A stretch of 64,000 nt of DNA. Source: Trichosphaerium sp. ATCC 40318. Lineage: Eukaryota > Protista > Tubulinea. The notes under the pieces were generated by a model, which made no database searches, was not told the origin of the DNA, and saw only the letters and a list, made by a program, of their open reading frames with translations. This document shows, in pieces, positions 14,559-60,327 of the stretch. The stretch spans positions 1-64,000 of the forward strand of contig JALMLS010000626.1 in NCBI GenBank assembly GCA_038496445.1, in the 5' to 3' direction. The translations under genes and the position numbers were made by a program. Every line of letters begins with the position of its first letter. Position 1 is the first letter of the stretch.

Positions 14559-17202
14559 ATGCTGTTTAAAGTAGTTCATGGGCACCAACGTGCGTAGAGA
14601 TTAGTAAATACGCGCTTTCTGTATGTAAATAAGGTAGTGTGCCCAAAGAAGCGTCAATACTCGTACAAGCCAACTGTAGCGTTGTATTTGGTGAATCAAA
14701 GGAGTTTCTTCGATATGACACTTGGGGCGTCGTTAAAAGTATACACACTCGATGACTGGTACGGCATTTCTAATGAGAAAATAAACCGACATGGCGCAAG
14801 ACCAATCCTTGAAAAGTAAGCAAATGCAAGCGATTGAGCTTGGCTTGAAAGTAATTTTTTTCAAAAATATAGATATGATCATTGTCTTCCTACTTGTCTT
14901 CAAACTTTATACAACGATTATGAATGGCAATCCTGGGAGTTCTTGTACGAAAGTGTTTACACCTATTTTGTATAAGTGTTTTGTCCGTGTTGACACGCAG
15001 CAGGCACGTGCCTGACGGATTTTGGGATAAAAGAGATCACGAGATTGGTAAATTTAACTCAATGGCTAAGACGATTGGCGTTAAGACTATGGATGATTGG
15101 TATCATGTAAAAAAAAGAGAAGTGCAGCTATTAGGTGCCAGTGGAGTGATACAAGTAAAGTACATGTCGAGAACCATTTTTCTCATCTTGTCTTGTACTA
15201 ACATTATCTTTTTTTTTCACAGTTACAAAGGATCGTATGTTCTGGCGTTGACAAGCATATTTTCAAATTTTGATTGGGAGCCATGGAAGTTCGCGTGCGT
15301 AGTTTTTGGCACTTTTCGCCTGGTCTATAAAAATGAGACATCATTACCACATGTGTTATTGAAAGCTGAACAACTAGTAATACTGAATTTTGCCTTAGAA
15401 ATAACAATAAGTTGTGGTGGCTTCAAGCAGCTGTAGAGATGAGAATCCAACCTGTGGCAAAAGAATTACGTGTTTTTATACTAGAAGATTGGTATAAAAT
15501 TAAAGATGAACAGGTTGCTATAATCGCACCTGACTTGATGCACAAGTACTATTTTTTTTTTAAGTGTCTTTTTTATTTTTTTTACGTTTATCCAATAGAC
15601 ACAATACGTTACAGGGTTTAGTATCAAATACATTCAAACACTATGATTTTAAGGAATGGGGAGCGAGGTAATTCATTGGTATTTAAACACCCAAGCTTTT
15701 TTTTGGATTGAAATGTAAATCGAATTTTTTTTTTGCTTTTTGTTGGTCAGTACTTCTTCTTTCTTCTTGGACATCTGACCATGGTTTTCAAACGCGAATG
15801 AGGGTAAAAATTAATCTATTTGCTATTTAACTTTGGTTCAGGCAAGTACCTCATAGTTACTGGCATTCACTTTCAAATAAGCGCGAGCATGTTGAAAGGA
15901 TTGGTGAAAAATTGTATCTAACAACTCTTGATGATTGGGTTGGTATACCAATAAAATTATTGATGTCTCATGGAGCATCAGCATCTATATCGAGCATGCT
16001 CAGATCCATATATCCTGAATTTGAGTGGGATGATATGTACGGAGAGGAACCTTTAAATTTTCAAAAAAGTGGAACATTTTATTCTTGGTTTTTTGACCTA
16101 ACTTGCAAACAGCGAGCCAAGGTTCAAACATCAATCTGGATTTTGGCGGAATACATCAAATCAATTAAAGTATTTGACAGAATTAAAAGACAAACTGCAA
16201 TTGACAAATCCAGCTAGATGGTAAGTACTGCTTTTTTGAACAAATCAAGATTTATTTCTGCCTGAGTTGCCGTATTTGTGTTTTATTGACAACAGTAAAT
16301 AGGTACACACTATCCAAGGAACAAATAGCTGGTGGGGGAGGCTCAGGGATCCTTAAATTTTTCCCTAGATTCGTCACGTTACTTCATCCAAACTACAACT
16401 GGAATTGGCCTGCCTTTTCAACTAAATTCAAAACAGCTAGCCAAAAGCACGTTAACACTCATTTTCACTATATCCTTATGGGAGCACGTGATATAACTTA
16501 CTCATCTTAGTTGGCTTTTACAATGTACTCAGTGGCTATTTGAAGGTTATGAGGTACATCAAGAGCACTGCGTAGGCTCCAGAAGGTCTTCTGGTGTTCA
16601 AGTGACTGTTGATGTATTTGTGTCTGCTTTTAATGTTGGCTTAGAATACCAAGGTAATTTCTTGCTTACCTTTAAAACCACCTTGGCTCATGTCAACTTT
16701 TAGGAGAACATCATTACGAAGACTTACATTGTAAAGGATCTGTTACGGCTTACGAAGCCAGAGACTTTGAGAAACTTGAACTTTGTAAAAAATCAGGTAG
16801 CTCCAAAGAAATAAGACTGGCTTCACTATTCTGACGCTCATTGTTACAACTGTAGGAATAACTATTGTACCTGTACCATACTGGTATGTTTTAATCGAAA
16901 AGATTTCAGTCACGTGACTTTTTTTAGGTGGAAAGGTGATATGGAATCTCTGGCTGCAACAATTGTATTTTATAAACCTAGTGTTCCACTTAAATATCCT
17001 AAAGGTGTTAAACCTCTTGTAGATTTACCACAAGAGTTATTTCGCCCTTCAAAGAGTAAGAACACTCAAAAGCATGTTTGTACTCAGCTAATGTTTTTTT
17101 TTTTAAGCTATGATGGCACCTTCTATAGAAGGATCTAGAGTGGTACACATAAACACAGAACAGCAATGGCGACCACTATCATTCACACGAAAACCAGTAT
17201 GA
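14559..17202 (+). CDS. Tandem Trp-rich repeat protein (5 repeats) with C-terminal Vsr/DUF559/RAP-like nuclease domain, copy 1
   Basis: Repeats P.GFW..(x)..LGVK..DDWY..G...L.KY..S....L..IYP...W..WKF. C-terminus QEH..VDVF..GLEYQG|EHHY..RD.EK..C..G|ITIVPVPYW|WKG..ESLAATI. Last exon ambiguous (stop ~17152 or 17202). Confidence 0.8.
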
Positions 17203-54911: not shown

Positions 54912-55368
54912 AAGATAAACACTATGCTTACAAGTACGGCAAAATTTATTTTTCAATAATAGAAAAACGATAAAAAGGTAAAAGGCTACACGATTCTTTT
55001 TAATATCACGTGCCTTGAGCGTGTATCTATCGTTTTTTCAACGTATGAGGGCGACTTGAATACATGAAGGATTCGGAGTGTTTTTAGCCCGTTAACTTAT
55101 GATACAAGTTGTTTAGCCTTTTGGGGAGCTATCTACGGAGAGGTATTCTTGCCGTGATGCCAAAGGTGAAGTAGAAACGCAATAATGAAAAAAATTAAAT
55201 CAGCGCAATGTGTATTGGTGTATTGAATCATCAACAAAAAATACAATTGCAACTTGCGTTAACGGGATTAATTCAAAACTAGTATTTTTTTTTTGTTTTT
55301 GTTGTCCAAGCGTTCACATTATCTGTGAACTATATTTTGGTTGTATTTACTAAGTATATAGCTAGTAT

Positions 55369-58056
55369 CTACACAATATCTATCGCTGTCGCTGGGGCCA
55401 TTAGGTGCTTTGTTGATCCCACCCCTAAAACCGATTAATATTAAAAACAGCCTGAGCACACTTTTTTTTTGCTAATGATTACCTAGCGCTTCGAGAGGGT
55501 CCACTGTTGTCAAGGGGGTTGTGCCAATACCTTCAACCAACCTCATTGATGTATCAACAGCATTGATCGTTGCAGCTAGCTGCTCTGGTGTACCATCCCA
55601 CCAATAAGGTATTAACACGAGCTTGATACCTACGAGATTACTCTTAGTAATTTTCGTTTTACTAATATTTTCCGTACCTCTATCTGTGCATACTTGTAAC
55701 TTCTCTGCGTCTCTACAAACTTGAAGAGCTAGAGGAGGGCTGTGTGGGGTCACTTGATCAAGAAAATGTTGTTCACCTGTACAAAATGAATAAACTGAAC
55801 TAGTAAAAGACTCTTACCTTGATACTCCAATGCAATATCGTATGTTGGTATAAACACATCCACAGATAGTGAGCGCCCTGTAGAAGGTCTGATACCGATA
55901 ATATGTTCTTCTAGAATCGCTAAAGGAGCTAGCAAGCGACGGACGCACTGAACCATGTACCTGTCATAATTTTAATCAAATTAGAAAAAAAACAGTCGGA
56001 AAAGAAAAAAAAAGGTGAACTGTACCTCTGCTTTGATTTTTTGTTAAACACGCTGAATTTATCCCATTCCCAATCATGATTCATGCCAGAGAATCGTAGC
56101 ATCCTTGGAAAGTATCTCCGAACGCCTGCACCGCCAACACTTACAATGTCTTGCTCTGACACTCGATACCTTAAAAAGCTATGAGACTTCTTTGTTTTGC
56201 TGCCATTCGCTGTACCATGCTTCTGGGCTATCAATTCTTAGTTGCTTTTTAGCTCTCGTGAAGAAATTCTCGAAAGATCCAGCTCGCAACCAGTAGTCCG
56301 TTTGGTGTTTTTTACTATTAAATAAATTTATGTGTCAGTTTTGTTTTACTTTTAAAGCGGTATGCTTCGTAACGCACGCAAAATTCCATGAGTATCTATG
56401 GTAAACAATACGTAGAGCATTTTGAAATGATGATCCAACGCTAAAATATGTTGTCAGTGACTATAGGTAACGAAAGCTAAAGAGGCACAAAACTTACGCT
56501 TTTATGGTATTAAACATAGGTGCGACATCATTGGACGTAGCGTTGTACCACCCACTGAGATCTTTTATATCCAGTTTATATGCTAGAGTATCGAATTCCT
56601 TGCGCGCTTGAGATATCCAGACGCTCTGGGTAGGCGTACTAAGAGGAAAAAGGCAAGTCAGCAAATAGGTTAACAGAACTAGGTAGTTTTCCCAAAAAAA
56701 ACGTGTACATAAACTTTTCACGTTGCCAAGCTTCTTTTGGGTAGATTGTTTTCAATGCACTGTATATGGAGCGGTCATATCTGAATAATAAACAACGTCA
56801 ATAGGGTAGTTCAAGATTGTTAAAAACCAAGAGATTCCAATGAAAAACCTTACTTTTCTAAAACAGGTTTTCCTCCTACAGCATTTATATCTTGTGGTAA
56901 CAAGTTATACCACCCTTCAATATTACTTATATCCAAAGTTTGTTTAATGTCATCAAAGAGCGCTTTTTGGTTTTTCTTATCGTCCCAGTAACCACGTGCG
57001 TTACGTCTAAACAACATCAAAAAATGCAGGAAAAAAAAAAGCAAAGTAACATACGCAAATTTATGTTCTTTCCAATCAAGCTCAGGGTAAAGATTTGACA
57101 ATGTCAAGAATATAGAGTCATCATATCTGGCGAGGACGGATTGACCACCTCGTTTGGTAATATCTGCATGGAGTATATTATACCAGTCTGTGAGTACTTT
57201 GACGCCAAGTTCTTGACCTATTTGTTGCATCTTTTTTTTCCGCAAGCCCTCGTCATCCCAAAAACCACGTGGGGAATTACTGAAATAATCAGAACGTTGT
57301 ATGCAAAAATGGTTCATTTTGTTGCCAACAATAAAAAATATTGACAAGAAAACAGTAATGTTACTTCATATTAATTAAAATCACGTGCCTGAACATATCG
57401 ATAATCCATTTCTTTCTTGGATACATAGCACACAGTGTTCTGTAGATTGATCCTTGGTATCTATCAAACACTGTAAGAACATCTCAGGTCAGTGCTTTTA
57501 ATCTATTTGCACCTGTTTGTCAAGATGCTTTGTGCACCGTGTTCGGTTAGATTTTTATAGGTTACACTGTACCAATCATCTAGTTCTTTAACGCCAAGGC
57601 TCTGTCCAATACTGTCAAATTTATCTCGTTGGTTTTTAATACTATTCCAGTGGTATTGAGGAACATTCCTGGTGCGTTGTTAGCATCTTTTAAGGTGTCA
57701 AGCGAAAAACGAACTTGAATTTCCATGCCCAAGAGTGAAGTGGGTACAAGTGTAATAAGACTCGAGATATGGAACCATTGTACCTACACAGTTACCATTA
57801 GCGTCTTGCTGTGTAGAAAAACTATAAAATGACATACTTAGTTGCTAGGACAGCCCCATGCTGCGCAAATCGCTCAGTTGATACGCTGTACCACTCATCT
57901 AGGTGCTTTACGTCCAACCGTTCGCCAATTGCATCTAATTTCGCTCGTTGATTTGTTTTACTATCCCAAAAACGATTTCTGGCGCGCCTGGGCGCGAATT
58001 AGCATATACATAAGATAATAAGTTACAAATACGCTTACGTACCCTACTGTACGCAT
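55369..58056 (-). CDS. Tandem Trp-rich repeat protein (6 repeats) with C-terminal Vsr/DUF559/RAP-like nuclease domain, copy 2
   Basis: Repeats such as NSPRGFWDDEGLRKKKMQQIGQELGVKVLTDWYNI..GGQSVLARYDDSIFLTLSNLYPELDWKEHKF. C-terminus EEH..VDVFIP..ALEYQG|EQHF..RDAEK..C..G|IKLVLIPYWWDG..EQLAATI. Confidence 0.85.
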
Positions 58057-58303
58057 GCTTGCGCGTCATGACCACGTTACCTAACAATGCGAAGATATTT
58101 TAGCACGTGTGGCAAAATAAAACTAGTAACACGGCTGATGGTACTTTTTTGGGCGCACACTTAACTTATTGCACGTGCACGTGCAATCAAACACACTTTG
58201 CTTTCGCTAATGAAAAAGATTTACAGTAAACAAACGCTTTTTCGCGTGCTTAAGTGTTTATTGTTAAAAAAACAACGCAAACACGCACGCACCACGTAAT
58301 ACA

Positions 58304-60327
58304 ATGGAAGTGGTACAACAAAAAGGTACAATAGCAAAAGTGGTTGGTTCCACTAATATTTTATACAGAGGTAAGTATGCTTGAGCGTTTCGTGGCATCT
58401 ATTGTATTGGCGGGCGTAGGAGATGCTATAGGTGCGTTATTACTCGGTTTTACGATTGTTATTTATGACAACCGCTACAGGGTATCACAATGGCGCCTGG
58501 GAGTTTGAATATTCAGGTACTTTGATTTAATACAAACATAAACAATTAATTTAATAACGGCGCCAGGCATCCAGGTTCACAAGGAGTTGAAGCGTAAGTA
58601 CGGCACAACTGATGATATAGAAGTCGAATCTCTAACGGTATCCGATGATCAGGTAACATCACAAACCTGTAATTACAACTCATTGAATGGTTTTTTGTCC
58701 TCCTAGGTGATGCACCTAGCAACTGCAGAAGCTCTTGTTGGTGCGATTTTTAAGAAAATGTTGGCTGACAGGACGTGTAGAGTCACAAAATGCTGAAGAA
58801 AGAGAAGACGTTTACAAGGCATTAGCACGTCACTATGTGCTTAGTTTCGATGATATGGGAGGTCGTGCACCAGGTACGCCATCACGAGAACAGTGTTAAA
58901 TTGACATAATGCAGGCCCAACTACAGGTTTGTCAGTGAGTCAATTACAACGGGATACATGGGACAGTGCGCTTTTTTTCTTTCTTTAATTCTCTCCTTAC
59001 GTGCTATTTCAAATACGTCGGTAGGTATACGGTATAGCCCCAGTGGTGGAGGATGTGGCGCATCTATGAGATCTATGTGCATCGGCTTGTTTTACTGTGG
59101 TGAAGCACAGGTATCAATTCTTTCTTGAAGACTCCATTTTATCTCACTCTTTTAACAGCGTGATCAATTGATAGCTGTAGCTATTGAAAGCGGTCGACTA
59201 ACACATAACCACCCTACTGGATTCTTTGGCTCATTAGTATCGTAAGTACATACAGGCTCTAACGAGATGTATAAAGAAGCTAACTGATTTTTTCTATCAA
59301 GTGCCTTATTCACTTCATATGCTATTGAGGGTATTCCTGTTGTAGGTGCGGTTTTTCTCATGTTTTCTTGAAATGGAGTTGACACGTTATATTGTTTAGA
59401 ATGGGGAAGATGCTTATTACGTTTGTTGCCAAGGGCATACGCATATTTGAAAACAATGGAGAGAGATTGGGGTGAATACCAAAAAGACTTACGTGTCTTT
59501 GAAAGGTACTGGATAGAATACCTCAATCTCCGATGTATTGCTAAAGATGTAAGTTGAAAGTACTACTTACGTGCTTATCTATACTTACAAAACCTGCCTA
59601 AGAACGAAAATGTCCCTAAGTTTCCAGAAGCTTATGGTGTAAAGGAACGAGACGCTTATTACAAATCTATCTCATATGCAGGCTGGGGTGGTATGTATAC
59701 TCAAAACACATGTCTTCTTTTACATAGTACTAATACTTGGAAATAAATAGGTGCTTCAGGACATGATAGTGTCATAATTGCATACGATGCTTTGTTAGGA
59801 GCTGGAAATGATTTTGGAGAATTGCTTAAACGAGGTGCTTTGCATGGAGGTGATAGTGATTCTACTGGGTACCCTTTTGTGGCAGTCTTTTTTGAACTAA
59901 CTGATATTAAAGTGTCATCGCTTGTAGCTGGTGGGGAGCTATACATGGTTTTAAAGGCAAGTCGAAAAAAGCAAAAAAAAACAACAAGTTGTTGAAGTCT
60001 GCTGTTGACTTGTATCCGTAGGTGTCTCAGGGAAAAATTATAAGAAGCTTGAGTATCGATACAGAGCACAAGAGGTACTGCCAATAAGATTAGATAACTG
60101 TTTTTGTATTAATGGCTTCGCAGTTGGGAATCTTGTTTTACAAGAGACATGCTGAGCGTCTTGGTTGTAATAAAGATGATAAGCTTCCAGAAGATTTAAT
60201 TGCTTTGCCTCCAAAGCGAGGACAAGATGCTGATCTCGACGTTTTGATGAGCGAAGATTCAATAGACTCAGATAAGACTGAAGAAATCAATAAAACATCA
60301 ACTGGAGATAAAAAAGAAGAACATTAG
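58304..60327 (+). CDS. ADPRH: ADP-ribosylarginine hydrolase (ARH1-like)
   Basis: GDAIG|Y..G.WEF, VSDD, DM.GRAP|[31 protein letters not shown]|[15 protein letters not shown]. Confidence 0.93.

Follow-up and report, generated by a model that had tools for sequence, protein, structure and literature searches.

The 64,000-nucleotide stretch of DNA analysed here (the window: positions 1 to 64,000 of contig JALMLS010000626.1 from Trichosphaerium sp. ATCC 40318) carries two deeply diverged genes of a repeat-nuclease family, and the one on the minus strand at 58056–55369, hereafter copy 2, is the principal subject of this report. Its predicted product is a tandem array of ~74-amino-acid repeats followed by a nuclease domain, and the sequence evidence gives about an even chance that this protein cuts or nicks DNA in a site-directed manner, with its basic repeat array aiming it. 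In such a scheme, the array would bind a nucleic acid at a specific site, with double-stranded DNA as the likeliest ligand, and would thereby position a Mg-dependent nuclease to nick or cut beside the bound site, in a manner resembling the phage EDxHD homing endonucleases with their N-terminal helix-turn-helix modules. Some relatives have a DNA ligase appended, which could subsequently reseal the cut. We infer that the substrate is DNA, that the array binds it in a sequence-specific way and that the nuclease is catalytically active. The family is uncharacterised, and a literature search found no description of it; the use of binding modules in tandem to aim a nuclease of the Vsr fold is itself a known kind of arrangement.

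Both gene models were rebuilt from three-frame translations and splice signals. Copy 2 comprises 16 exons and 15 introns of 41–109 nt, with a coding sequence of 1803 nt that specifies 600 amino acids. The array of six tandem repeats begins at residue 5, almost at the start of the protein, and is followed by a C-terminal PD-(D/E)XK nuclease domain of ~150 residues. The repeats fit the family consensus P..(F/Y)W...NQR.F...L...LGI....DWY.V......GG..LL..Y.GS...AL...YPE..W..WKF, and the C-terminal domain carries the signature D...E-Y-Q-G-E-Q-H-F...R-D-x-E-K...P-Y-W-W. RNA support was sought in assembler contigs of public runs, all of them small, over positions 55300–58200, where three contigs from two runs were found, none of them reaching the 3′ half of the gene. 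An 808-nt spliced contig from run X2 joins exons 2–7 with zero mismatches and omits introns 2–6 exactly as modelled. Run X1 confirms intron 7, through the joining of exons 7 and 8, and contains a loose end that fits the exon 8–9 join (intron 8). Copy 2 is expressed, and seven of its 15 introns are RNA-confirmed, including one of the GC-AG type; two further runs with the same species label, X3 and X4, yielded no contig on the gene. The features of copy 2, together with its paralogue, are as follows (R, repeat; HMM, hidden Markov model; ORF, open reading frame; P0024, the closest homologue).

58043–58056, minus strand: exon 1 (14 nt, ATG at 58056, ending in phase 2); the first in-frame ATG past a stop, with a strong GTACGT donor and a CAG acceptor that sets the frame of exon 2; without RNA coverage.
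57715–57987, minus strand: repeat 1, exon 2 (57987–57838) plus exon 3 (57783–57715), divided by the phase-2 intron 2; the intron is seen in the spliced contig, and the family HMM matches both exons.
57389–57668, minus strand: repeat 2, exon 4 (57668–57513) plus exon 5 (57460–57389); introns 3 and 4 are seen in the spliced contig.
57280–57388, minus strand: intron 5, GC-AG with donor GCACGT, 109 nt, phase 2; skipped exactly by the spliced contig, with plus-strand ends CT..GC.
57055–57279, minus strand: repeat 3, a single 225-nt exon lacking an intra-repeat intron; unbroken in the spliced contig and the best repeat-HMM match in the window (1.3e-24).
56709–57006, minus strand: repeat 4, exon 7 (57006–56854) plus exon 8 (56780–56709); introns 6 and 7 are RNA-confirmed.
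56378–56638, minus strand: repeat 5, degenerate, exon 9 (56638–56498) plus exon 10 (56440–56378); the exon 8–9 join comes from the loose end in run X1, and the second (“b”) exon lies below HMM detection.
56026–56314, minus strand: repeat 6, distinct and terminal, exons 11 and 12, split within W|Y; it groups with R5 of copy 1 and R7 of P0024 (support 99/97).
55483–55960, minus strand: Vsr/DUF2726-like PD-(D/E)XK nuclease domain, exons 13–15, interrupted by phase-1 introns at EYQ|G and CTDR|G; local phmmer against homologues gives 2.8e-28, the family profile matches both ORF pieces and the residues are conserved, with the fold taken from the homologue.
55369–55424, minus strand: exon 16, C-terminal tail and stop codon; the splice sites fit, and an LMAP motif has counterparts in the final exon of copy 1 and at the tail of P0024; without RNA coverage.
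14560–17202, plus strand: copy 1, the five-repeat paralogue, whose nuclease is the same; it matches copy 2 at 2e-74 in BLASTP.

An earlier note on this DNA, made from the letters alone, had described copy 2 as the second of two repeat-nuclease paralogues on opposite strands, with six repeats rather than five, and had remarked that the repeats were highly diverged while the nuclease residues were retained. The rebuilt models and the BLASTP match agree with this description on all counts. The two proteins are ~29% identical overall, the repeats share 24–44% identity among themselves, and both copies retain D, E, H, D and K in the nuclease. When the window was scanned in six frames with the family profiles, copies 1 and 2 alone were detected.

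The nuclease domain of copy 2 is Vsr/I-Bth0305I-like, with a Vsr-type fold predicted from a homologue and with its catalytic residues intact. An alignment of 65 domains reveals near-invariant D, E, Y, G, H, D, K, P and W, arranged as E-Y-x-G-x-x-H, D-x-x-K and P-x-x-W, and five of the aligned residues (D40, E51, H57, D76 and K79) are conserved in at least 90% of the 65 sequences and in both window copies. The catalytic set in Vsr and I-Bth0305I consists of the corresponding Asp, His and Asp (PMC3239194). Going by motif order, and not by superposition, these residues would be equivalent to D51, H69 and D97 of Vsr. An AlphaFold2 (AF2) model of the nuclease of P0024, to which exon 13 of copy 2 is 49% identical, reached a predicted local distance difference test score (pLDDT) of 86. 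With this model as query, Foldseek gave 3r3p and 1vsr as its best matches (probability 1.00), and VIA gave Z scores of 9.2–9.5 to NGO0050 (3hrl), Vsr (1cw0) and I-Bth0305I (3r3p); AbaSI/PvuRts1I were also matched in the structure search. A profile search of the Protein Data Bank sequences with the nuclease alignment returned no relative.

Family databases are in keeping with this assignment. Pfam DUF2726 (PF10881) matches weakly in 28 of 68 homologues at E ≤ 0.1, and DUF559 is likewise weak in homologues. Among papers listed for DUF2726, none concerned a repeat-nuclease family of this type, going by title and abstract. The homologue P0082 scores 32.3 bits against DUF2726, with a cut-off of 24.7; the window’s own domain is split over three exons. 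In PHROGs, the nuclease domains of homologues match phage families named homing endonuclease, intron-encoded nuclease and HNH endonuclease, the best at 7.6e-16. NCBIfam contains no family for the repeat or for the nuclease.

The closest well-studied likeness is to the EDxHD homing endonucleases, represented by I-Bth0305I (3r3p; PMC3239194). Both have a C-terminal Vsr-fold nuclease with residues of the Asp/His/Asp type, I-Bth0305I being the best or a near-best structural match, and in both the nuclease is aimed by N-terminal tandem nucleic-acid-binding modules, a role that we infer for the repeats of the copy 2 family. There are also differences. The homing endonucleases have two NUMOD/helix-turn-helix motifs, whereas this family has 4–24 five-helix repeats of 74 residues; their ORFs lie in group I introns, inteins or phage, whereas copies 1 and 2 are nuclear, deeply diverged paralogues with spliceosomal introns. 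The motif also differs, being D...E-Y-Q-G-x-Q-H...D-x-x-K here. Similarly, the Vsr/DUF559/DUF2726 nickases (E. coli Vsr, V.NaeI, NGO0050) share the fold and the catalytic layout, but they are single-domain bacterial proteins, whereas here a long repeat array precedes the domain. Recognition of a T:G mismatch by Vsr depends on intercalating Trp residues and a zinc site.

The repeat itself is less readily placed. Its period is 74–75 residues across the family, and an AF2 model of three P0024 repeats plus the nuclease (pLDDT 86.8; predicted template-modelling score, pTM, 0.60) gives each unit five short helices. Across 956 repeats, the column entropies describe a conserved hydrophobic and Trp skeleton, with ~25 variable surface positions spread along amphipathic helices; an isolated pair of hypervariable residues is absent. 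No Pfam model passes threshold on the repeat, and Pfam found nothing meaningful on the ORF pieces of the window. The nearest family is DUF4046 (PF13255), which aligns with the whole repeat unit (profile positions 14–87 of 90) at 15.6 bits, below its Pfam cut-off of 22.8, and which also appears as faint precomputed matches in the homologues P0001 and P0015. A protein atlas sets the repeat region beside DUF4046 clusters, with a template-modelling score of 0.77 that was measured on an atlas neighbour and not on the query. The function of DUF4046 is itself not known, and a literature search found no paper that mentions it. Neither NUMOD nor helix-turn-helix Pfam families matched the repeats, which gave only marginal Myb_Rap1 and SAM-like signals, and no PHROG matched them. 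The arrays are basic, with isoelectric points of 9.7 in copy 2 and 9.2 in copy 1 and a family median of 8.9, a property that fits nucleic-acid binding.

Relatives of copy 2 are numerous. A full-library search with a 171-amino-acid ORF across R3 and the first exon of R4 yielded 3,872 cluster representatives at E < 1e-3, of which 1,738 also passed E < 1e-10; the closest are 26–37% identical; a word-index homologue search with P0024 returned only P0024 itself and P0001. The best 150 representatives have 4–24 contiguous repeats, most commonly five or six, and in most of them the repeats begin within the first 50 residues. The same nuclease is present in 79 of these 150, mostly at the C terminus. 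The sequences come from marine protist transcriptomes (MMETSP), from the amoebozoan Cavostelium with its many paralogues, from metagenomes and from one metagenome-assembled genome labelled “bacterium”. Four members (P0049, P0068, P0100 and P0134; Cavostelium is the source of three and a Logan-assembled public run of the other) continue past the Vsr-like nuclease into an ATP-dependent DNA ligase. PF01068 scores above its gathering threshold in three of the four, and the ligase of P0068 matches the PHROG “ATP-dependent DNA ligase” at 6e-22 and the NCBIfam model PRK09125 “DNA ligase” at 1.6e-45. It is possible, judging from this domain order, that the repeat-nuclease-ligase proteins are cut-and-seal enzymes.

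Viral genomes also contribute to the family. One member (locus L004, 8001–9515) lies on a contig with Pox_VLTF3, a late transcription factor of the poxvirus type, and with eIF-1a, GIY-YIG and DUF5871, a mark of giant viruses. Another (locus L002, 5001–7529) has neighbours without known families, apart from a weak DUF5899, and its contig may be viral. The tails of these two members give weak RAP/MTES_1575 matches rather than DUF2726. Among the other architectures, P0082, from Cavostelium, has two nuclease domains, one internal and one C-terminal, and P0120 has its nuclease in the middle of the repeat array. A 2124-amino-acid homologue (locus L001, 3001–9375) has 24 repeats in a single uninterrupted ORF on a 1.37-Mb contig; a split TIM gene nearby suggests that this contig derives from an intron-bearing eukaryote.

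Several points weigh against the putative DNA-cutting role. The structures were predicted for P0024 and not for the copy 2 protein, and the pTM of 0.60 leaves the geometry between repeats uncertain. Neither Foldseek nor VIA found a solved structural analogue of the repeat; on the three-repeat-plus-nuclease model their matches fell on the nuclease part only. More pointedly, the nuclease fold matches RAP-domain RNA-binding proteins almost equally well, with Z scores of 8.5–8.6 to the RAP proteins of the Toxoplasma gondii mitoribosome (9i05_Xr, 9g6k_Li) and to the RAP module of FASTKD4 (9gek). Some homologues in UniProt and AFDB bear the automatic name “RAP domain-containing protein”, and the tails of two divergent homologues, P0004 and P0078, weakly match Pfam RAP (0.0009–0.0013, under the cut-off).

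These same matches furnish the main rival explanation, namely that copy 2 is a RAP-like organellar RNA factor. Here, the array would bind an organellar transcript or rRNA fragment, and the Vsr-fold domain would act as an RNA endonuclease or binding module, as in the OPR-RAP, HPR-RAP and FASTK proteins. The OPR-RAP proteins of Chlamydomonas, the HPR-RAP proteins of Apicomplexa and the FASTK proteins likewise consist of repeats followed by a C-terminal Vsr fold and likewise form expanded gene families; the present family is multi-copy in the Trichosphaerium genome, like the NCL/OPR-RAP genes of Chlamydomonas (PMC13126933). The likeness does not extend to the details, however. No Pfam RAP (PF08373) match was obtained for the window pieces, for P0024 or for the 68 homologues at E ≤ 0.1–1, and the units are five-helix modules of 74 residues instead of helical hairpins of 35–40. 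The catalytic His is near-invariant in the family, whereas FASTKD4 has Asn at that position and is inactive (PMC11879112). Nor is a transit peptide evident in the gene models. The repeats start at residue 5 in copy 2 and at about residue 12 in copy 1, so that both copies are almost without an N-terminal extension (the 5′ end of the model is not covered by RNA), and in most relatives they have begun by residue 50, so that a targeting sequence would have little space. Taken together with the DNA ligase fusions, the kinship of the nuclease with phage homing endonucleases and the members in giant viruses, this apparent lack of room for a presequence favours DNA over organellar RNA as the substrate, and the organellar reading is regarded as possible but rather unlikely.

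The viral members raise a further and distinctly less likely explanation, in which the genes would descend from a giant-virus element, either domesticated by now or selfish to this day, akin to a homing-endonuclease gene that moves between viruses and protists, and any cellular role would lie in genome defence or conflict rather than in housekeeping. The contig with Pox_VLTF3, and perhaps the one with the weak DUF5899, would fit such an origin, as would the patchy distribution of the family, its large expansions (e.g., in Cavostelium), the preponderance of Nucleocytoviricota and Amoebozoa among the atlas neighbours and the nuclease held in common with phage homing-endonuclease families. The window copies, by contrast, are expressed and hold 13–15 spliceosomal introns, and they combine deep divergence with conserved catalytic residues, which argues for long residence in the host under selection. 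No flanking mobile-element features turned up, and no systematic search was made for them.

The TALE, PPR and PUF proteins offer a further comparison. In each case, a tandem array is fused to an effector, and the number and order of the units could set the length and sequence of the target. The units of those systems are 33–36 residues long, however, each with a defined code of one or two residues and with a scaffold that often hardly varies between units, whereas the 74-residue units here are 24–44% identical and have no discrete hypervariable positions; no one-unit-per-base rule emerges. A more ambitious proposal is that the family as a whole consists of widespread modular DNA-targeting nucleases of protists and giant viruses, in which each DUF4046-like repeat would read a few base pairs, repeat number and order would set a long target site, ligase-bearing members would cut and reseal DNA, and symmetric two-exon cassettes would provide an evolutionary route to new specificities. 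Taken whole, this is improbable. Module-guided nucleases (TALENs, zinc-finger nucleases, PPR and PUF designs, and homing endonucleases) matter both in biology and as tools, and an array that read sequence modularly would represent a new class of targetable nuclease as well as a new player in virus–host or genome-maintenance biology. Were copy 2 an organellar RNA factor instead, its repeat would be a fourth type beside PPR, OPR and HPR.

The arrangement of introns in the two genes is regular. All 12 introns in and beside the repeat region of copy 2 (introns 1–12) are in phase 2, as are all nine repeat-region introns of copy 1, and exons 2–12 of copy 2 are all multiples of three; introns 13–15, in the nuclease part, are in phase 1. 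Two sites recur. The first falls between the second and third bases of the codon just past the terminal W..W.F and is occupied at nine of nine internal repeat boundaries across both genes. The second, likewise after the second base, splits the codon immediately ahead of the Y conserved in Y..S and is occupied in seven of the nine non-terminal repeats, being missing from R3 of copy 2 and R4 of copy 1. Accordingly, R1, R2, R4 and R5 of copy 2 each consist of an “a” exon of 141–156 nt and a “b” exon of 63–72 nt. A family-wide repeat HMM, built from other species, places every “a” exon at profile positions 1–51 and most “b” exons at positions 49–75. The last repeat of each gene departs from this plan and is split within W|Y, in phase 2. 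That site is common to both paralogues, as are S.Q| before the nuclease (phase 2), EYQ|G (phase 1, in the Gly codon) and C..(R/S)|G (phase 1); an additional intron, at PY|WW, occurs in copy 1, and the site of the last intron differs between the copies. The earlier note had claimed both the two recurring phase-2 positions and the four shared sites, and all are present in the rebuilt models, with the spliced contigs matching modelled introns 2–8 and revealing no differing boundary. The phase pattern would lie far beyond chance only if the introns were independent, which they are not: two or three distinct positions have been repeated.

From this regularity, the earlier note had gone on to suggest that same-phase cassettes are put to use, through exon skipping or through ongoing gain, loss and shuffling, in order to vary the repeat set and hence the target specificity. 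The structural premise holds. Every repeat exon is symmetric (phase 2-2) and a multiple of three, so the loss or duplication of any one would leave the reading frame intact, and repeat number does differ, at six and five in the paralogues and 4–24 in the family. In addition, adjacent repeats of copy 2 score higher against one another than against any repeat of copy 1, and R1/R2 (44% identity) and R3/R4 (39%) are weakly sister in the repeat tree, which hints at past local duplication.

The use of these cassettes is another matter. No skipped, shuffled or alternative junction occurs in the few spliced contigs that cover exons 2–9, although assembled contigs hide rare forms. In the structural model, the “a” exons encode helices 1–4 of the five-helix unit, and the “b” exons encode helix 5 and the Trp-rich tail only. 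A “b” exon is therefore predicted not to be a folding unit; skipping of a single exon would break a domain, and only the loss of an a+b pair would leave folded units. All five homologues checked at the DNA level are uninterrupted ORFs, and such intronless homologues span 5 to 24 repeats, indicating that introns are not needed for repeat gain or loss. Within copy 2, DNA similarity between cassettes amounts to one 87-nt stretch of 70% identity between R1 and R2, blastn found no similarity between the introns of different cassettes, and Tandem Repeats Finder detected no tandem DNA repeats. The expectation of hypervariable specificity positions failed, since the column entropies of the 956 repeats exposed no discrete ones, and paralogues only ~29% identical argue for an old and stable arrangement. 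The array is old, with no sign of recent turnover.

Repeat-level phylogeny across the paralogues was informative in one respect. The tree resolves only the terminal repeat, with R6 of copy 2, R5 of copy 1 and R7 of P0024 grouping as orthologues (99/97), and does not single out the “extra” repeat of copy 2 relative to copy 1. A colinear BLAST pairing of R1 of copy 1 with R2 of copy 2 had no backing from the repeat score matrix and was set aside. On the simplest reading, the recurring phase-2 introns would have been inherited from an ancient tandem duplication of a two-exon repeat unit, followed by long divergence and by the later loss of one intron in R3 of copy 2 and one in R4 of copy 1. The regular introns are thus probably not a working device for isoform diversity, and ongoing diversification through the cassettes is considered very doubtful. 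Exon-cassette structure alone is an ordinary by-product of repeat duplication.

Two smaller features of the locus deserve mention. Each paralogue has one GC-AG intron, and the donor is GCACGT in both (copy 2, 57280–57388, minus strand; copy 1, 16447–16510, plus strand); the intron of copy 2 is RNA-confirmed, and that of copy 1 was assigned because no GT donor suits the frame. Finally, an intergenic region of ~250 bp (58057–58304) separates copy 2 from a divergent ORF that starts at 58305. Several CACGTG palindromes lie within this region, among them a tandem gcacgtgcacgtgc near 58170–58185, and the region may serve as a shared bidirectional promoter with E-box-like sites.

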